The notes below the pieces were generated by a model that had not been told where the DNA came from, did not search any database, and was given only the letters and a program-made list of their open reading frames with translations. The position numbers and the translations under genes are program-made. This document shows positions 1 to 57,642 of a stretch of 64,000 nucleotides of DNA, piece by piece. The DNA lies in NCBI GenBank assembly GCA_002269645.1, contig NIVC01000108.1, positions 248,001 to 312,000 on the forward strand, read 5' to 3'. This stretch comes from Macrostomum lignano. Its lineage: Eukaryota. Every line of letters begins with the position of its first letter. The first letter of the stretch is position 1.

Positions 1-369
1 GCCAGGTACTTGGAGTTCTCGAGAAAAGGGCGCGAGGATCGCTACGTGAGACTGCGCTCTGCTCACGGAGACCTGGTGGTCACGGAGGGCGCGATCGAGG
101 ACCTGTACATCCACCGGATTCCCAAGGATCCGATGGCCCGTCGCACGAGCTACACGTTCTCATTCCGGTACATCAACCCGGTGAAGAAGGCGGAGGAGGT
201 CCCGAAGGTCGCCGAGGCGCCGGCCAAGGCCGCCCCGGAGTCGTCGGAGAAGCTGGCCGAGGCTCCGAAGGCGGAGCCGGCTGCCACTGAGGAGACCTCC
301 GCGACCCCGTCTGGCAAGAAGGGCAAGAGCCCCGGCCCGGTGGGCAGCGGCAAAGGCAAGAAGAAGTGA
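1..369 (+). CDS. 3' part of an AlkB-family (ALKBH2/3-like) dioxygenase paralog with a Lys/Ala/Glu/Pro-rich tail; 5' end lies outside the window
   Basis: Nt 1-199 match 2643-2841 at all but one (synonymous) position. It encodes ARYLEFSRK...HGDLVV...HRIPKD...TFSFRY, then a unique tail ending GKGKKK*. Confidence 0.8.
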   Translation, partial: ARYLEFSRKGREDRYVRLRSAHGDLVVTEGAIEDLYIHRIPKDPMARRTSYTFSFRYINPVKKAEEVPKVAEAPAKAAPESSEKLAEAPKAEPAATEETSATPSGKKGKSPGPVGSGKGKKK

Positions 370-1263: not shown

Positions 1264-1725
1264 TAAGCAGGACTCTGAAGTGTTATGCTGAGGCTGTAGC
1301 TAAGCAGGACCCTGAAGTGTTATGCAGAGGCTGTAGCTAAGCAGGACCCTGAAGTGTTATGCTGAGGCTGTAGCTAAGCAGGACCCTGAAGTGTTATGCA
1401 GAGGCTGTAGCTAAGCAGGACCCTGAAGTGTTATGCTGAGGCTGTAGCTAAGCAGGACCCTGAAGTGTTATGCTGAGGCTGTAGCTAAGCAGGACCCTGA
1501 AGTGTTATGCTGAGGCTGTAGCTAAGCAGGACCCTGAAGTGTTATGCTGAGGCTGTAGCTAAGCAGGACCCTGAAGTGTTATGCTGAGGCTGTAGCTAAG
1601 CAGGACCCTGAAGTGTTATGCTGAGGCTGTAGCTAAGCAGGACCCTGAAGTGTTATGCTGAGGCTGTAGCTAAGCAGGACCCTGAAGTGTTATGCTGAGG
1701 CTGTAGCTAAGCAGGACCCTGAAGT
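1264..1725. repeat. 37-bp minisatellite, about 12.5 copies (TAAGCAGGACCCTGAAGTGTTATGCTGAGGCTGTAGC)
   Basis: Period 37 read directly (units start at 1264, 1301, 1338...). Confidence 0.97.
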
Positions 1726-1817
1726 TTAATAAAGTTTCTATGTCACAATGGCACAGGCTTTCGCATAACAACGCAGTAAGGTTATTTGCTTCATCCAATT
1801 ACAGATTCGACGTAAAG

Positions 1818-2879
1818 ATGGAGAAAGTCCCGATTGATGCCTCTGAGATCCTGATCCTGGCCTGTCCTCAGTGCCAGTTCATGACGCTGAAGGTGGCGTC
1901 TCTAGATGGCCACCTGAAGGAGCACAACTGCAGGATCCACGTGAAGCTGAACAAGTGCAAGCAGTGCGGCATGATCACCAACTCAGACAAGGTGATTGAG
2001 GAGCACTTGCAGATCTGGCACCCAAGCAAGGACGTGAAGGAAAACATTGCCATTGTGTTTGATGAGACTTACAACCAGGACAAGCCGGCTAGTGAGCCCA
2101 AGGCAGTGACGAATGCTGGTGGTGGTGGTGATGCTCAGAAGTCAGGAAAGTCGAGCATTGCTGGTCTGCCGCAGATCAATCTGCTGCAGCTGATGTACAT
2201 GGCCCACGGACCTGTGGAGATCAACCTGCCTGGCAGTTACCAGCTGGACAGGACCAAGGACGGGGTGCACGCGTGCATCTCGTTCATGCCGAGCTTCTTG
2301 AACCGGACTGTCGGTGAGAACTTCATGGAGAGTCTGAAGCAGGATCTGTCGTGGAAGCAGCTGACTTTGACAACAAAGGACGGCAAGGAGCGTCAGGAGC
2401 CTCGCCTGACCTGCTATGTCGGTCCTGACTTTGAGTATTGTGGCAACAAGTTCGAGAACTGCAACGACTGGAACCCGAAGCTGAAGGATCTGAAGGAGAT
2501 CGTAGAGAAGGCGGTTGGGCGGGAGTTCAACGCAGTGATTTGCTACATGTACCGCAACGGCAGGGACAGCCTTGGGTGGCACTGCGAGAAAGAGAAGCCG
2601 CTTGGTGAGCACCCGTACATTGCGGCTGTGAGTTTGGGCCAGGCCAGGTACTTGGAGTTCTCGAGAAAGGGGCGCGAGGATCGCTACGTGAGACTGCGCT
2701 CTGCTCACGGAGACCTGGTGGTCACGGAGGGCGCGATCGAGGACCTGTACATCCACCGGATTCCCAAGGATCCGATGGCCCGTCGCACGAGCTACACGTT
2801 CTCATTCCGGTACATCAACCCGGTGAAGAAGGCGGAGGAGGCCCCGAAAGCCGCCGGTGCTAGCGGTGATTCAGCCTGA
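1818..2879 (+). CDS. Intronless C2H2 zinc finger (x2) - AlkB 2OG-Fe(II) dioxygenase fusion protein (ALKBH2/3-like domain)
   Basis: CPQC-x12-H-x3-H and CKQC-x12-H-x4-H at 1863-2021. C-terminal half has EPRLTCY, FNAVICYMYRNGRDSLGWHCE, IAAVSLG, HGDLVV and HRIPK, matching ALKBH2/3 motifs. The ORF opens at 1740; ATG 1818 (AAGATGG) is the likelier start. Confidence 0.85.
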   Translation: MEKVPIDASEILILACPQCQFMTLKVASLDGHLKEHNCRIHVKLNKCKQCGMITNSDKVIEEHLQIWHPSKDVKENIAIVFDETYNQDKPASEPKAVTNAGGGGDAQKSGKSSIAGLPQINLLQLMYMAHGPVEINLPGSYQLDRTKDGVHACISFMPSFLNRTVGENFMESLKQDLSWKQLTLTTKDGKERQEPRLTCYVGPDFEYCGNKFENCNDWNPKLKDLKEIVEKAVGREFNAVICYMYRNGRDSLGWHCEKEKPLGEHPYIAAVSLGQARYLEFSRKGREDRYVRLRSAHGDLVVTEGAIEDLYIHRIPKDPMARRTSYTFSFRYINPVKKAEEAPKAAGASGDSA

Positions 2880-3436: not shown

Positions 3437-3933
3437 TCAGGTTGGTCCTCCACCTTCCCAGATCGTCAGGTTGGTCCTCCATCTTCCCAGATCGTCAGGT
3501 TGGTCCTCCATCTTCCCAGATCGTCAGGTTGGTCCTCCACTTTCCCAGATCGTCAGGTCGGTCCTCCAGCTTCCCAGACCATCAGGTTGGTCCTCCACTT
3601 TCCCAGATCGTCAGGTTGGTCCTCCATCTTCCCAGATCGTCAGGTTGGTCCTCCACCTTCCCAGATCATCAGGTCGGTCCTCCAGCTTCCCAGACCATCA
3701 GGTTGGTCCTCCACTTTCCCAGACCACCAGGTTGGTCCTCCACTTTCCCAGACCATCAGGTTGGTCCTCCACTTTCCCAGACCACCAGGTTGGTCCTCCA
3801 CTTTCCCAGACCATCAGGTTGGTCCTCCACTTTCCCAGATCGTCAGGTTGGTTCTCCATCTTCCCAGATCTTGTTGGTCCTCCAGCTTCCCAGATCGTCA
3901 GCTTGGTCCTTCATCTTCCTAGATCATCAGCTT
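3437..3933. repeat. 29-bp degenerate minisatellite, about 17 copies (CAGATCGTCAGGTTGGTCCTCCATCTTCC)
   Basis: Directly visible tandem units; explains ORFs 3416-3954. Confidence 0.93.
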
Positions 3934-4474
3934 GATTACCATTTTTGCCTTTAATAACAGGTGGGTGGCATCCAGGACCATTCGAGCCATATGTAGACAT
4001 ACTTTAGGAATCTACTGTATACCAGCACCCGCGACATGATCGGGATGAATAAGTCCTAGGACTCACTGAGTCACTGCAAATTGTCCTCGGATTTCCCTTG
4101 ATGCTGTGTGCTCAATTAGGTTGTGTGTACCCGCCTCTGTACCCGCGCAGAAGCGCGACTGACCGCTCCGAGCTGACATAAATTAGCTTAGCATCGGGAC
4201 ACTGGGGTGGCTAAACCTGCAAGTACTGTACACACCCGAGCGCTGTGCTGAGTGAGTTATTCGGCTGTTTATGGTGACACTGGTCGCAGGGGTCTCTGCC
4301 TCTGCCTGCCGTCCTCCCATTGTTTGCTGACAGGCCAGATGCGACGCCTGCGCATTCAGAGTTACTGAGGAGGGGGTGGAGGTGGGGTGGCAAGTGAGAT
4401 AAGCAAATGCCTCAGGCTAAGAGAGAAAAGCAAACGGCAAGAGGCCGCGCCTGCAGAATTATTGGAATTATTGG

Positions 4475-9235: not shown

Positions 9236-10522
9236 TTTCATTAGGACTTTAGTTGGTGGTTCTATATTTGCCAAATACACTTGTAACCCGTAACTAAAGA
9301 TTGACTCGCGCAAACAGATAAGGCGAGCAAAACCAACGCGAGCAGCCTTTAACCGGAGGGGGTGGGTGCGCGCGGACAGAGAGACGGAGGGGGGAGGGGC
9401 GCGACGGAGGGCGAGAGAGTACATAGCGGCCAGGCAGGGGAGCGCAAACGAAACTCGAAACTCGCTTAGACTTTGCGTGACTTACGCGATTCGTAAGTCT
9501 AGTTAAGTCGATAAAATGTTGTCTATGGAAGAGAAGACAAAAAATCAAATCTAAAAAGCTAATTTTAATGATATGGATTTCTTGCTTTACTTTTTACTAA
9601 CAGTAATAGGAAATGGGCACCAGTTTTATTTTTATTTTATTTTAAGAAAGTACCCAAAGAAATACATGCATGTACAAGCAAAAGATTATAATGTTTTAGA
9701 ACGCGAGCAGTTGTTAACCAGTTTTTTTGGCTTGACAGTTAAAAGTCGTAACAGATCAACTCAATTAAAGTAGACAATCAACCCGCACAACTCCACATTG
9801 ACCCCTAAATCACAGAACACACCAGTTGTGGACATCTTAGCTGCAGGGCTGTCCCGGGGGGACACAGCGGGAAGGCGCGAACGCCCATTCCGCTATGTCG
9901 TGGACATCACTACCAATCACACCCTCAGACTTTAGCATTGATAGTATCGAGGTACTTGTTTACGTAATTCACCAACTCTTCCTTTTCTCCAGGCGAGAAG
10001 TTGGGTTGACGCTTGGTCGCCATGATCTTTGTTGTCACTTGCAGTATTAAAGATATCGTACCCTGAGATCTTTCCGATAAGTGCTTCTTACGACTGATAC
10101 CGAGCAGTCGTAGGGTTAAGATCAACCTTACGAAAGACCATAGACATACGAACGTTTCGAGAAACGGTCTTTTGCGCAAAGTTACGAGCTCGCAAAGTTG
10201 CGATCAATCGTACGTCGTTTCAAGTTGCGAGACTTTCGAGCAAGCCATAAGCACTTCCTCCCAACTTACGTCTATGGCCGATCGTAAGTTGCTTTCGAGA
10301 AAGACCCCCCCCCCTGGCCGCTTTGTACTCCGTATGTACTCTCTCGCCCTCCGTCGCGCCCCTCCTCCCTCCGTCTCTCTGTCCGCGCGCACCCACCCCC
10401 TCCGGTTAAAGGCTGCTTGCGTTGGTTTTGCTCGCCTTATCTGTTTGCGCGAGTCAATTTTTAGTTACGGGTTACAAGTGTATTTGGCAAATATAGAGCC
10501 ACCAACTAAAGTCCTAATGAAA
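9236..10522. mobile_element. Non-autonomous DNA element with about 200-bp terminal inverted repeats, enclosing Harbinger-like sequence
   Basis: 9236-9434 is the near-perfect reverse complement of 10313-10522. The interior ends in TTTCGAGAAAGACCCC (Harbinger-like terminus; second copy near 10770-10785). Confidence 0.75.
9925..10023 (-). pseudogene. Truncated Myb/SANT-like DNA-binding ORF typical of PIF/Harbinger ORF2
   Basis: MATKRQPNFSPGEKEELVNYVNKYLDTINAKV* resembles the start of MSANTD-type domains. Confidence 0.5.
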
Positions 10523-10852
10523 TGATATCCGGATTGTCAACCGAAGAGATTGGGGCCATTTTGGATGAGCCTGACGATCTTCCGGAGTCTGTGATAGCTA
10601 GATCCAAAGGACGAGGATATTCTGGATTCATTGTTCCAGGCGATACCCAACTAAAAGGTTCATCTGTTTGAGCTGGAAAAAAATAGTTTCTGAAATCGAG
10701 GATGCCGCTGCTAGCAAGCCATAAGCACTTCCTCCCCAACTTACGTCTATGGCCGATCGTAAGTTGCTTTCGAGAAAGACCCCCTGAAACTGGCTTTTCG
10801 AGAAACTGGCTTAGTATTGATCTTACGCAGAGCGTAAAGTTCGTAAAGCGTA

Positions 10853-11588
10853 ATGTTGAGTGCTTAAATGGTCTATCTTTAAATATACCATTTTCCAAGC
10901 AATTGAATCCTTAGTGGGAAAATAAACCTATTGAAGACTTGCTTTCCACTGTCTATGGCCCGAAAGGGGGTCTATGGAGCAACTCATTTGAGAATTTGGG
11001 CGCGCTATTAATCCTTTCCACAGTTGTGCAAGCCTTGGACCATAGAAAAATAGCAGATTTCATTAGACAAACATAGATATGGCAGACGAGGAATTTAGCG
11101 AGCAGAGCAGTGCCGAAAGGTTTGCTTCGGGTTTGATTTGATCGGGTTTGATTTCAATCTGTCCAACACTGTTTTGAGAGACACGATTGTTCTCGGCTTA
11201 TACTGTATGCCATGGTTTTGCCTTTGCCATGGGACCTGTTTTGATTGGTTTCTTTGAAATCAAAGTGTTAATGTCAATCGTTTTTTGATATCTACTTGCC
11301 ATCTATTTGCTGACGTTATTTCAGTGAAGTTATTCGTGAAGGAAATACGAGCACTGCGTGTGAAAAGGATTAATTGCGCGCCCAGTTTCTCAAATTGGTT
11401 GCTCCACAGACCCCCTTTTGGGCCATAGAAAGACAAGTCTTCAATAGGTTGATTCTCCCAATAAGGATTAAATTGCTTGCTCCTAGGCTCGATTGGCTTG
11501 GAAATGCTATATTTAAAGATAAACCATTTAAGCCAACCAAATGCAAATGCAAATAAACCAAATAATTAGACCACTAAGCACTCAACAT
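10853..11588. mobile_element. MITE-like element with long imperfect inverted repeats
   Basis: 10853-11020 is reverse-complementary to about 11362-11588, with indels (ATGTTGAGTGCTTA...TAAGCACTCAACAT). Confidence 0.65.
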
Positions 11589-13518
11589 CGATATATGAAT
11601 CCTACATTCATGACAAAACCATGGGGCCTCCTAGTGAGACATACGAGCTAGGTCTGCATGTTTGCATGGGAGAACTCTGCCGCAGGGAAAGCCACGGAAA
11701 TACCATGGGGACCATGGGGACCATGGGGGACAGTCAAAACCTGGTCAGGAAGGGGGCGGCCGTCCTGACTTTCACAGTGAGGCGCTGCTGCGATCAGAGG
11801 GGCTATTCAGCATTTTGGTCGGGCCACTGCACATGGGAGCCTGTTACAGCCAACAATCAGATTGTCACAACTCATCCACTCAGGTTCTCTCATAATCGCA
11901 GCCGAGCAGAGAAGGTGCCTTCTCAACTCTGCGGTGCTAAGAGAAATCTAAATAATAAGGTCGCTGCTCTGCGCAGAAATGAATTGAGGTGCGGGTCACA
12001 TGCATCCTGTCACCCTGATCGTCTGGCGGAGGGAAGGCCTGAAGGAAGTCCCGCCTACAGATGTCCCCAGACTAGAGGCTTGTGCACTGATGCACCGCAA
12101 GGAGGAGGAGAATTTTTGCTAGATCCCTATATTCTCTCTCCTCTCTCTTCATCATTTTCCTCCACCCGCTCGATCAACTCCTTCAGTTTAACAGAGCGAG
12201 CCTCTGAGCCTACTCGGGTCCGAGCCTCCACCAGAGCTGGCACTCCAGCTACTAGAATCCACCAGCGTAGATTTGCTTGGTACAGTCCTCTCCATCCCTG
12301 CTTGATTAAATTTTGTTTCGTCATGTAGATGTTGTGCTTGAATTCTTCTTTGCTCACCAGTTTCGAGTGTAGAAATTCTCCAAAAATCAAAGTCGATAGA
12401 CTCTTAGTTTCTTCCAGTGGTCACTGGATACTACTTACAGTAATCAGGCACACCCTGCAGCAACTTGCTGGACCCAGCCGGATCCAGATAGTTGATAGTA
12501 CAAAGCTGCATTTCCCGCTCAGCATCCTGCACAGCATCCAGGCAGACCCCCGGCAGCCTTGTCAGCGGGCTGTCTGACAGCGAATCACTCGAGCACTTTT
12601 TAACCCCGGGCGTTGGCAGACTCGACAGCTGGGTCCGGATGAGCTGCTACCGGTAATGAATCGGCACAACAATGACCCCGGAGAGGCAGGCAGGCCGAGT
12701 ATTCATTATCTGCGCGGCTTTGCCGAAATCTTCTTCTGGGGGCAAAGTCCGACTTTCACTCCGTGCCCGGCTTCCCACCCCGAACCGCAGAGGCAGCGGT
12801 AGAGCGGGGGCAGCGCCGCATTCGCCTCCTCCACTCCAGCTCCGATGCCCCCCGCTGCCAGCAAGCCTGCGGAACACGCCCTGCAAAGAGGATTAAACAA
12901 GCAAAAGAAGAAGAGAGCTGCGGAAGCCAGCGGAATTCCTGAAGCCGCAACTGCAGGTGGCTGCAGCCCCCCCCCCCGAGCCGGCGGCCTCCGCACTGAT
13001 AGTTTTCTCCCGTACTTGATCAACAGCCCGCAGAAAGTTCCCACAGCACAAAAACTTCTACAGGCCTTCAACTCGCCAAGTTGCTATGCCGCTGACAGGG
13101 AATCAGGGCTGAAGAAGACGCGAACTCGAACCTCTCACCGATGTTGCCAAGCCAGTAGGTTAACAAAACTTCAAGTTTAATGGCGAGAAGTTGCTGATTT
13201 TAATTTTTTTTTCAAAGCTAGCAAAAGATTTTGTACAGTTCTGCACAGTTTAGGCGACACAAAAAGACGCGGAAGTGCAGGAAATGTCAGCAGCAGCTGG
13301 GACGGGCCATTCCATCATCTTTTTTATCGGTGTGTTTCAATTTCTGTGCTGCAGTAGTCGAAAAGTGCTGCTGCTAATGCTGCTGTAGGTTATTTTGCAA
13401 CTGCCGTCAGACCCTCAATGAATTTGGCCTCTCCCATGTTTGTAGCTCTGCACCTGTTCAGCAACTTCATGGTCTGGTGTCATGCAAGACAACAGTCTTA
13501 CTGCTTTCACAAGTTCAG

Positions 13519-13818
13519 TCACTGTGCAGTCACAACCTCCAGTTCCTGTGCAGTCACAGCCTTCAGTTCCTGTGCAGTCACAAACTTCAGCTCCTGTGCA
13601 ATCATGATCTTCAGTTCCTGTGCAGTCACAACCTTCATGCAGTCACAACCTTCATGCAGTCACAACCTTCATGCAGTCACAACCTTCATGCAGTCACAAC
13701 CTTCATGCAGTCACAACCTTCATGCAGTCACAACCTTCATGCAGTCACAACCTTCATGCAGTCACAACCTTCATGCAGTCACAACCTTCATGCAGTCACA
13801 ACCTTCATGCAGTCACAA
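13519..13818. repeat. 17-bp minisatellite (GCAGTCACAACCTTCAT) with 24-bp variant units at the 5' edge
   Basis: Period 17 read directly. Confidence 0.95.
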
Positions 13819-14317
13819 GCAGCAGCCACAGAGCGATCATGAGCTTAAGCGATTTGTCAGCCCAGCTAACCTTACAGCCCGGCAGCACTCTTGCTGTATA
13901 CTTGATTAACCCCCCTCTCAAGTCTCCCGCAGTCAGTCGATGGAATGGCATTCGATGCGTGCACGGGCAGCCCGAACTCCCGGCTGCAAAAGCAGACACT
14001 GATACAAGCTGTTCAAGTCCATTCGCTTTATCTGAATTACCGCCAGGGTCTGCAAGGGCCAGACATTAACTCGCACTTGCAATCGGTCATTAGCGCTGGA
14101 TCCCGCTAGTTCCGCTTCCCATCCCAGCTTTTCTCTCTTTTGACTGCTGTTGGCAGGAATCGTTCCTGACGCCCGCTTTCTACACTTCGCCGTCGAAAAT
14201 TAGTGGCTTGCTGACCCCGAATGCGAGCCCTTGCACCTGCTGCTGGCGGCCTTTTAGTACATAATTATTGCTGCACTTCAGAATCTCCATGCTGCTTGGC
14301 TGCCTGTTAGACAGATC

Positions 14318-15241: not shown

Positions 15242-17091
15242 TCAGCCGCTCGGGCAGTTGTCATAGTAGGACCCCTGCTGCACGTGATTCGCCTGTCCGT
15301 CAGGCGATGCCAGGGCGCCGCCCTGCTGTTGCAGCAGCAGCAGCTCGACAGTAGCCGCCGCCACGGCTCGCTGGTTGGCTCCCGCTGCCGGCCCGTTGCT
15401 GTCAACGCCGCCGCCGCCGCCGCCGCCGTCTTCCGCTGTCTGGTCGAGCCGCCGCAGCCGCCTGGCGGTCAGGTAGATGAGTTCAACCAGCTCGAAAGCG
15501 CAGGTGAGGGTGACCCCGATGGTCAGGCTGCCCAGGCCTCCCAGGCGGCTCATCAGCGCGCTGGGGGTGATCTGCAGCGCCTCCTGCTTCACCAGGGTGT
15601 TGTAGTTCATCCGGGTCACCGTGACCAGGGCCATCTTCTCGGCCAGCTCCGACTCGAACACCTTCAAAGCTTCGACCTCGGGCGCGCCGGCCACGGACTC
15701 AAGGTCGGTGAAGTTGATGAGGCGCTGCAGCTGCTCGCTGAAGTGCTGATCGAACGGGTTGTCCATCACCTGCTTGAGGGCGCTGCTGATGTGCATCATC
15801 CAGTGGATCTGCCACACCTGCGGAGTCCAGTTGGAGGAGGACAGGTGGCTCTCGTAGTGAAACGTGGTGCACGGCTTCTGGCAGGTGGAGTGCATCACGC
15901 TGGCCATCAGATTGCTGAGGTTGAGGTTCCTGACGCAGTCCAGCCTGCGGATGAAGTCAAGCGGGTTCTCGGCGCTGTAGTGGCCGCAGTAGGGCGCGGC
16001 CGGCCCCGCCGCTGGCGGCGCACGTGGAAGGCGGAGGTGCAGTTGCACTGGCGGCGGATCAGCTGCCCAATTTGGCTGCTCAGGCAGGCGGCGAAGGTGT
16101 ACTTGTACCGACTATCGTCATCCAAAATGTCCGGCAGGCGGGCGCTGTCCGCGCACTCGCCGGCCGGATAGTCGAGCTTCTGGACCTTCACGGCCTTGTA
16201 CTTGATCAGCGTGGAGGTGCGCATCTGGACGCTGAAGCCGTCTGTGTCGGCCAGCGGGTGCGTGCCGGGCTCGTGCAGCACAATGCGGAAGCCGGCGCCC
16301 TGATTGAAGATGTCGAACACGTGCTCCTTGTCAGCCGGGTCACGCGACACCCGGACGCCGCCGCCAGCCGTGGAGCTGATGTTGTGCAGCAGGTACTCGT
16401 TGAGATGCGCATTGGAGAGGATCAGCGACAGGCTGCTGACGTAGATTGACTCGGCGTCGTCCAGCTCGAGGTCGTAGCAGACCAGGTACTCGGGGTGGTG
16501 CAGGCGGGCCCCGGTGACCTTGAAGTTGCACTTCTCCTCGTGCGCCACGCTCGGGTTGGCGTTGTTGCTGTGCCGCATGACGCAGAAGGGGACGAGCTCG
16601 GCCAGCTGATGGCCCAGCTGGGTGGCCTGCGACTCGCTGATGAACTGGAAGTAGGTGGCCATCTTGTCGTTGCGGAACAGGCTGGCGGCGTCCGCGTACC
16701 GGCCCAGGCGGACCATGCGGCCCATGCCGTGGCGCAGGTCGCGGGAGAACCTGGCCGGGCTGGGCACCTCTCCGGAGCGCCACAGTGAGGCGGCCTCGGG
16801 CGAGAACGGGCTGAGCGAGCAGACGGTCAGGCTGGGGAACGGGGTCGGGTCATTGAGCACCTCCTCAATCTGGTAGGACTTGTTGTAGGTGAAGAACTCG
16901 GCGAAGAGGTTGAAGGAGCCGTAGGCGAGAATGACGGTCATGCTGGCAATGTAGAAGAGCCAGTGCAGCCGCAGGGCCGCGTACCGGCTGCCGCAGCACT
17001 TGCGGAAGCCGCGCATGCTGGTGTTGTCGATGAAGGTGGCGAGCAGGAAGCTGCAGAACGACCGCTCCCTGCGGGCTGCCTCGGAGGTCAT
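15242..17091 (-). CDS. Intronless DEG/ENaC (ASIC/FaNaC-like) channel subunit with a single 1-nt frameshift at about 16020
   Basis: Pre-TM1 FIDNTSMRG, TM1, FPSLTVC, GFRIVLHEPGT, Cys-rich thumb (KYTFAAC...CNC, CQKPC) and TM2 SRLGGLGSLTIGVT. ORFs 15907-17091 and 15242-16048 join if one C is added after CAC GTG. Confidence 0.85.

Positions 17092-21026: not shown

Positions 21027-57642
<36,616 letters not shown>

Follow-up and report, generated by a model that had tools for sequence, protein, structure and literature searches.

Copy B and its tandem sister gene

The window, by which we mean the whole analysed stretch of 64,000 nucleotides from Macrostomum lignano (GenBank assembly GCA_002269645.1, contig NIVC01000108.1, positions 248,001 to 312,000 of the forward strand), carries near its left end a gene for a protein with two C2H2 zinc fingers, a linker and an AlkB-type domain in which the metal ligands are kept and two contacts to the co-substrate 2-oxoglutarate (2OG) appear to have been lost. 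The gene, here termed copy B, is a single uninterrupted open reading frame (ORF) of 353 codons without introns (Table 1). Its start codon was placed at position 1818, and an alternative ATG at position 1740 giving a longer ORF of 379 amino acids (aa) was rejected, because the orthologue in a second, older assembly (L001) contains an in-frame stop in the extension and the upstream ATG is also missing in a tandem sister gene, copy A. An exact-product look-up of the 379-aa ORF gave no record. A 204-aa ORF on the opposite strand (2142–2756) is a by-product of the codon bias of copy B.

Only the 3′ end of copy A lies in the window, and a tblastn search of the window found no further copy of the gene. 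The C-terminus of copy A reads SYTFSFR, as in copy B, followed by a longer basic tail rich in Lys, Pro, Ala and Glu that ends in GKGKKK. Both copies are intact in L001, where copy A encodes 397 aa (10007–11200) and copy B 353 aa. They are approximately 98–99% similar (window positions 1–214 against 1816–2856; also L001 positions 10005–11045), with homology that begins 2 nt 5′ of the ATG and ends near codon 347, while the C-terminal tails differ. Because the similarity stops at the limits of the coding sequence (CDS) and the flanks are unrelated, the pattern suggests a gene-conversion-like homogenisation restricted to the CDS. The 37-bp minisatellite that fills the spacer between the copies has 12.5 units in the window and approximately 33 in L001 (12089–13322), thus its length varies between haplotypes or homeologues.

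The closest database protein, a hypothetical protein of the free-living flatworm M. lignano (BOX15_Mlig024840g2; P0001), is 99% identical. The corresponding NCBI model (L001 10001–14347) wrongly joins the start of copy A to copy B over the intervening spacer and has lost the frame at its end, which accounts for its "partial" status. The locus is mis-annotated as a single partial gene, and the P0001 frameshift is an artefact of this joining of copy A to copy B in the annotation.

Table 1. Features of the copy A and copy B locus; residues are numbered on the copy B protein unless stated, and human residues are those of ALKBH3
Feature	Position in window	Strand	Evidence or remark
Copy A, 3′ end (last 122 codons and stop)	1..369	+	tblastn, 98.5% identity to residues 302–369 of the 379-aa ORF
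37-bp minisatellite, 12.5 copies, spacer between copies A and B	1264..1728	.	Tandem-repeat detection
Copy B CDS, complete and intronless (two zinc fingers, linker, ALKBH3-like domain)	1818..2879	+	Translation; start fixed by upstream stop in the L001 orthologue
Zinc finger 1, C16-x2-C19-x12-H32-x3-H36	1863..1925	+	Sequence, invariant ligands, model
Zinc finger 2, C47-x2-C50-x12-H63-x4-H68	1956..2021	+	Sequence, invariant ligands, model
Gly/Lys/Ser-rich linker, residues 85–111	2070..2150	+	pLDDT below 50 (predicted disordered)
ALKBH3-type double-stranded beta-helix domain with nucleotide-recognition lid, residues ~120–335	2175..2822	+	Pfam, PDB matches, model
Y243-M-Y245 for human N179-L-Y181	2544..2552	+	Alignment; Asn lost, Tyr kept
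H255-C-E257-K258 for human H191-S-D193-D194	2580..2591	+	Alignment; metal ligand Asp to Glu, adjacent base-pocket Asp to Lys
H313 (human H257), distal metal His	2754..2756	+	Alignment; kept
S325-Y-T327-F-S329-F-R331 for human R269-V-N271-L-T273-F-R275	2790..2810	+	Alignment; first Arg lost, distal Arg kept

An ALKBH3-type domain with an altered cofactor site

The AlkB-type domain was recognised by Pfam as PF13532 (2OG-FeII_Oxy_2) with 51.7 bits against a cut-off of 31.2, in a match that spans profile positions 4–173 of 194 and ends before the C-terminal motif. Human ALKBH3 was the best solved relative by sequence (E ~2e-29), followed by ALKBH2 (E ~1e-7). An AlphaFold2 model of the copy B protein, built on an alignment of 68 sequences, had a predicted local distance difference test score (pLDDT) above 90 across residues ~120–335, and a Foldseek search with it returned ALKBH3 structures as best matches (8jnk; template modelling (TM) score 0.94, root-mean-square deviation (rmsd) 1.8 Å). 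The top ten matches were all human ALKBH3, with target-normalised TM scores of 0.88–0.95, and ALKBH2 came next. The domain, described in the original prediction as ALKBH2/3-like, is thus predicted by sequence and model alike to be specifically ALKBH3-like. In a neighbour-joining tree the gene likewise grouped with metazoan ALKBH3, in a part of the tree where the deep nodes are weak. Within the lid, human R131 and Y143 are kept as R196 and Y207, the position of Y141 is occupied by Phe, and the equivalent of L177 is present as Ile. We nevertheless classify the gene, from its sequence, as a divergent ALKBH3-derived paralogue and not as an ALKBH3 orthologue, because two of the defining cofactor motifs fail and a third is varied.

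Human ALKBH3 numbering was transferred by alignment, anchored on Leu177, His191, His257 and Arg275 (PMC10816986), and the residues at the active site were compared across 257 AlkB-type homologues (Table 2). The reading of the metal-binding HxD as HCE at positions 2580–2588 in the original prediction was exact, and alignment to human ALKBH3 also bore out YMY in place of NxY and S-YTFSF-R in place of RxxxxxR, with an Arg two residues upstream (Arg323) and a further one three residues upstream of S325 (Arg322). Of the N-x-Y motif the Tyr remains and the Asn is gone, and of R-x-N-x-T-x-R only the distal Arg remains. The metal triad, H255-C-E257 with H313, agrees with the motif as written for the superfamily, HxD/E...H (PMC10816986), but departs from the Asp that nearly all AlkB-type homologues have as the acidic ligand. 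Ser at the R269 column together with Glu at the D193 column was found among the 257 homologues only in one other M. lignano paralogue (P0003/P0152).

Table 2. Active-site residues of human ALKBH3 and their equivalents in the copy B protein
Human ALKBH3	Copy B	State	Human residue type in homologues
N179	Y243	Changed	Asn, 246/257
Y181	Y245	Kept	
H191	H255	Kept	
D193	E257	Changed	Asp, 252/257
D194	K258	Changed	
Q252	E308	Changed	Gln, 253/257
W255	Y311	Changed	
H257	H313	Kept	
R269	S325	Changed	Arg, 254/257
N271	T327	Changed	
T273	S329	Changed	
R275	R331	Kept	

The first Arg of the C-terminal motif and the Tyr bind the C5-carboxylate of 2OG, in ALKBH5 and in the family generally, the Asn of NxY binds the C1-carboxylate, and the distal Arg has been linked to O2 activation, such that ALKBH3 activity is abolished on its loss (PMC3985658). 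By alignment, then, the protein retains its metal ligands together with the Tyr and the distal Arg, and has lost both polar clamps on 2OG, the Arg and the Asn. In addition, the charge is reversed at the position of D194 (D194K), which is equivalent to AlkB Asp135, a residue that contacts the substrate base (PMC10816986).

The original prediction had described both zinc fingers as canonical, which holds for their spacing and not for their profile scores or linker. Both fingers satisfy C-x2-4-C-x12-H-x3-5-H and are predicted to form beta-beta-alpha (hairpin-plus-helix) units, and all eight zinc ligands are invariant in three M. lignano paralogue families and in contig L003. Pfam C2H2 models scored below threshold on the fingers of the window gene (zf-C2H2_4, zf-H2C2_5 and CEP104_ZnF, E 0.004–0.6), while the homologous L003 fingers passed several C2H2 models. 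The two fingers are separated by 10 residues (NCRIHVKLNK) without a TGEKP-type linker, and Foldseek with the finger module alone gave weak generic C2H2 matches (E at least 0.02). Because TGEKP linkers are absent, the Pfam scores are sub-threshold and the structural matches are weak and generic, the sequence evidence does not support sequence-specific DNA targeting by the fingers.

A small, apparently Macrostomum-centred family and purifying selection on its rewired domain

Word-indexed protein searches with the gene itself and with the family alignment returned almost nothing outside M. lignano. Relatives were obtained by searching 1.84 billion representative proteins exhaustively with HMMER, which gave 4206 AlkB-type matches, of which only five were below 1e-30; cluster and contig look-ups then helped to define the family. 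The finger-bearing members that were recovered are listed in Table 3. All eight zinc ligands align across the family members and the finger–AlkB fusion is therefore taken to have arisen once. M. lignano also possesses ALKBH3-type genes that lack fingers and have canonical sites (P0006/P0154 and P0013); in P0013 a second, degenerate C-terminal domain seems to be present.

Table 3. Finger-bearing AlkB-type genes and their motifs
Gene	Source	Architecture	Motifs
Window gene, copies A and B	M. lignano	Two fingers and AlkB	Rewired
P0003/P0152 (708 aa)	M. lignano	Different finger pair, dead AlkB-like domain, rewired AlkB	YMY, HCEK, SYAFSFR
P0007 family, three loci (Mlig015948, Mlig016819, Mlig021096)	M. 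lignano	Same two-finger module and AlkB	HSD, RINLTFR
L002	ENA ERZ25070786	Three fingers and AlkB (AlkB 51% identical to the window protein)	HSDD, RINFTFR
L003	ENA ERZ3792534	Three fingers and AlkB	HSDD, RVNFTFR

Among the recovered matches the finger part was covered by no protein of another named species. The fusion apparently forms a small, Macrostomum-centred family: the architecture might have proved to be common, and the search yielded only a few M. lignano genes together with L002 and L003. Literature searches for the architecture and for the locus tag found no paper. The sequences are already public as uncharacterised hypothetical proteins, and the finger–ALKBH3 architecture is absent from the described animal ALKBH families, as had been proposed, and from every other named species recovered. 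M. lignano is recorded as retaining DNMT1/3 and ALKB2 (PMC9246332). Other AlkB fusions among the matches have different partners, namely the bacterial Ada zinc domain and those of P0091, P0015, P0082, P0039 and P0118, in which AlkB is joined to PRP39 HAT repeats (in a barnacle and other contigs), a reverse transcriptase, a 3′-5′ exonuclease or a metallophosphoesterase.

The altered site is limited to one M. lignano clade, formed by the tandem copies A and B and P0003. In the neighbour-joining tree this HCE clade had 100% bootstrap support and a long stem, with L002 as its sister (100%) and then L003 (93%). The P0007 family, L002 and L003 keep HSD and RxNxTFR, so the rewiring is a later event in one sub-clade; these finger-bearing relatives already have Ile or Thr at the Asn position of NxY and are otherwise canonical. 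In P0003 (L004 12457–14136) one 560-codon exon encodes two such domains in succession, first a degenerate AlkB-like one that lacks the H/D/H ligands and then the rewired HCEK AlkB domain. An unrelated protein of 202 aa, P0135 (L006 973–1581; Logan SRR33230377), reads ERY, HAEK and RIALSFR, with the first Arg kept. The P0135 contig is compact and prokaryote-like, and in it the pair of Asp-to-Glu and Asp-to-Lys changes recurs independently, together with smaller residues on the last strand.

Identical motif changes occur in the intact ORF of copy B and the 3′ end of copy A in the window, in both intact copies in L001, and in P0003 and P0152, and hence in three gene types and two independent assemblies. 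Over 236 codons the window domain and the P0003 domain in L004 share 213 identical amino acids (90% protein identity), with a proportion of nonsynonymous differences (pN) of 0.088 and of synonymous differences (pS) of 0.86. This pS is past saturation and the synonymous rate (dS) could not be computed by the Nei–Gojobori method; four-fold degenerate sites were therefore compared with a compositional expectation. Of 83 such sites within identical amino acids, 67% differ, against 75% if they were fully randomised at the compositions of both genes, and a Jukes–Cantor correction of these figures gives a dS of approximately 1.7 and an omega (the ratio of nonsynonymous to synonymous rates) of approximately 0.05. 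The window gene has a GC content at third codon positions (GC3) of 0.77–0.79, compared with 0.49 for the L004 paralogue (13414–14130); this compositional shift explains part of the synonymous difference, but strong constraint is still indicated.

A threshold of at least 90% conservation among 21 canonical sequences singled out 45 positions. At 16–17 of these the rewired proteins have changed, against 5–6 in the canonical finger-bearing relatives; the changes specific to the clade are grouped around the pocket for cofactor and base and are the same in both rewired paralogues apart from Thr or Ala at position 327. By this comparison, many changes on the stem and conservation thereafter bear the signature of a functional shift and not of decay, of which the dead domain within P0003 provides an example in the same lineage. 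The alterations are thus not confined to a single copy, being common to copies A and B in both assemblies and to the divergent P0003 under purifying selection, and the sequence comparisons indicate a functional gene under strong purifying selection that results neither from sequencing error nor from decay.

The window gene has no introns, and the rewired domain in L004 is likewise uninterrupted, while the L002 and P0007 genes have two CDS introns each. Intron positions differ between these two genes, which weakens an argument for a retrogene from shared introns, and shared intron positions were set aside as evidence. Retroposition followed by tandem duplication is a plausible origin for the intronless gene.

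The window as a whole is unusually rich in minisatellites, with 24 tandem-repeat (TRF) rows scoring at least 200 and units of 15–212 bp, several of which give long spurious ORFs. A 29-bp minisatellite of 17 copies (3437–3934) lies approximately 560 bp downstream of copy B and produces spurious ORFs of 150–170 aa in three frames. A 30-bp satellite at 45011–49642 and 55447–57141, whose unit is the same in both stretches apart from rotation, is split by a long interspersed nuclear element (LINE) within the region 45011–57141; ORF1 of the element lies at 49924–51639, and ORF2 (51636–55340) encodes an endonuclease, a reverse transcriptase and an RNase H. The LINE appears to have inserted into the satellite. 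On the reverse strand, an ORF at 15907–17091 with a strong match to PF00858, the family of amiloride-sensitive sodium channels (E 7e-32), probably belongs to a DEG/ENaC gene as one of its exons.

Possible functions and comparison with known systems

We tentatively favour a non-canonical role, possible on the present sequence evidence without being probable, in which a selected, neofunctionalised paralogue, tethered by its fingers, would bind or regulate modified bases while coupling this to 2OG turnover very poorly or not at all. An ancestor with two N-terminal C2H2 fingers gave rise to an intronless copy, putatively by retroposition, and this to the tandem duplicates A and B. On the stem of the clade approximately ten otherwise invariant core positions were altered, including D193E, D194K, R269S, N271T, T273S, Q252E and W255Y, with Tyr at the Asn position of NxY, and the new state was then held in place by strong purifying selection. 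The finger pair may anchor the protein to nucleic acid or to another protein as partner. A base flipped out of single-stranded nucleic acid may still be accommodated by the conserved lid and base pocket of ALKBH3 (R196, Y207), and H255, E257 and H313 may still bind a metal ion. Canonical clamping of 2OG would be lost, as the Arg for the C5-carboxylate and the Asn for the C1-carboxylate are both absent. Loss of the Arg that binds the 2OG C5-carboxylate argues against a standard demethylase, and canonical ALKBH3-type genes remain in M. lignano for repair (P0006, P0013 and the P0007 family).

Several features weigh against a role as a binder. A full metal triad, in which the replacement of Asp by Glu is conservative, together with Arg331 and Tyr245, is what would be expected of a catalytic enzyme, and the superfamily motif HxD/E...H admits Glu (PMC10816986). 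Arg323, which precedes S325 by two residues and points to the same side of the strand, might take over from the missing Arg, and the combination of HAEK and RIALSFR in P0135 hints at a workable catalytic configuration of Glu, Lys and smaller residues. The conservative Asp-to-Glu change and the P0135 pattern favour explanations in which the enzyme is active.

The first of these is an oxygenase with changed chemistry, which we consider somewhat unlikely. It would retain an active iron site (H255, E257, H313 and R331) and use another co-substrate or none, in a pocket rebuilt from Y243, S325, T327, S329, E308 and K258; a candidate co-substrate would be a 2-oxo acid without a distal carboxylate, and the substrate may differ as well: in place of cationic m1A (1-methyladenine) or m3C (3-methylcytosine) it could be, for instance, a base that is neutral or bears a carbonyl. 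In favour of such an enzyme, the triad, Arg331 and Tyr245 are kept across paralogues with saturated synonymous sites, the pocket changes are coordinated and concentrated and not scattered, HAEK, ERY and RIALSFR occur together independently in P0135, and the charge is reversed by D194K at the equivalent of AlkB Asp135 (PMC10816986). The sequence points, however, to no particular co-substrate. Natural 2OG-oxygenase homologues that have lost the C5-binding residue are usually inactive, which also counts against an oxygenase of this kind, and we know of no AlkB-family member that functions without the C5-binding Arg. The fuller proposal, of an active AlkB-family oxygenase without canonical 2OG dependence, using another co-substrate or a Tyr/Glu-modified iron site, aimed by its fingers and acting on a base other than m1A or m3C, strikes us as rather unlikely from the sequence. 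If true, this would be the first natural AlkB-type enzyme without the 2OG-clamping Arg.

We consider it unlikely that the protein is an ALKBH3-type demethylase of the usual 2OG-dependent kind that its fingers recruit, with Glu257 standing in for Asp and Arg323 or Arg322 for the lost Arg. This reading would accord with the acceptance of HxE in the superfamily, the presence of Arg at −2 and −3 from S325 in every HCE copy, the Ile or Thr that already replaces the NxY Asn in otherwise canonical finger-bearing relatives, and the conserved lid residues R196 and Y207. Against this, Arg at the R269 column and Asp at the D193 column are nearly universal (254 and 252 of 257), three 2OG-contacting positions (N179, R269 and N271) are altered together, R269 is retained even in close relatives with an Arg upstream of it (QRCRINFTFR in L002), and the Pfam match ends before the C-terminal motif (4–173 of 194). 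That the gene is a decaying duplicate or an assembly or sequencing artefact, as could be supposed of a tandem duplicate in a repeat-rich genome with a partial, frameshifted NCBI model, is very improbable and largely refuted by intact ORFs with identical motif changes in two independent assemblies and three gene types, by an omega of approximately 0.05 against a paralogue with near-saturated synonymous sites, and by the origin of the P0001 frameshift in the annotated join of copy A to copy B.

For the oxidative removal of base methylation, whether in repair or in erasure, AlkB-family enzymes are the reference system, with Fe/2OG contacts that are regarded as invariant. A selected ALKBH3-type domain that lacks the 2OG-clamping Arg and Asn and keeps its iron ligands would amount to a natural experiment on the capacities of the fold, and sister genes with the same fingers and a canonical site in the same animal make a paired comparison possible. 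Its function is directly testable because M. lignano is a transgenic model for regeneration and the germline that is amenable to RNA interference. Should the protein prove merely to be an inactive binder, it would be a modest addition to the catalogue of pseudo-enzymes.

Compared with human and other metazoan ALKBH3 (PDB 2IUW, 8JNK and 9NCZ), the window protein shares the fold and lid (TM 0.94, rmsd 1.8 Å) at approximately 32% identity and keeps the equivalents of R131, Y143, L177 (as Ile), Y181, H191, H257 and R275; for L003, a finger-bearing relative with a canonical site, identity to metazoan ALKBH3 is 42% over the AlkB half. The window protein differs in its N-terminal C2H2 pair, in being encoded by an intronless, tandemly duplicated gene, in D193E, D194K, N179Y, R269S, N271T, T273S, Q252E and W255Y, and in a RED motif that reads KDG. 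With the P0007 family, L002 and L003 it has in common the two-finger module (eight aligned ligands), the ALKBH3-type domain and the loss of the NxY Asn, which is Ile or Thr in these relatives; unlike the window gene, they keep HSD(D/N), the Gln, the Trp and R-x-N-x-T-F-R, they have introns, and L002 and L003 possess a third finger. P0003/P0152 shares the same rewired AlkB domain (YMY, HCEK and SYAFSFR; 90% protein identity), but its finger pair is only ~31% identical, the 560-codon exon also encodes a dead AlkB-like domain ahead of the rewired one, and its GC3 is 0.49 compared with 0.79 in the window gene.

More distant parallels are found outside the family. Bacterial fusions of Ada_Zn_binding (PF02805) with AlkB likewise join an N-terminal zinc module to the oxygenase, but the module is of the Cys4 Ada type, the proteins are prokaryotic with canonical catalytic residues, and their origin is independent. 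In JmjC pseudo-enzymes the double-stranded beta-helix fold is kept under selection after the loss of cofactor residues, and these proteins usually lose metal ligands; the window protein, in contrast, keeps the triad and has lost only the contacts to 2OG.

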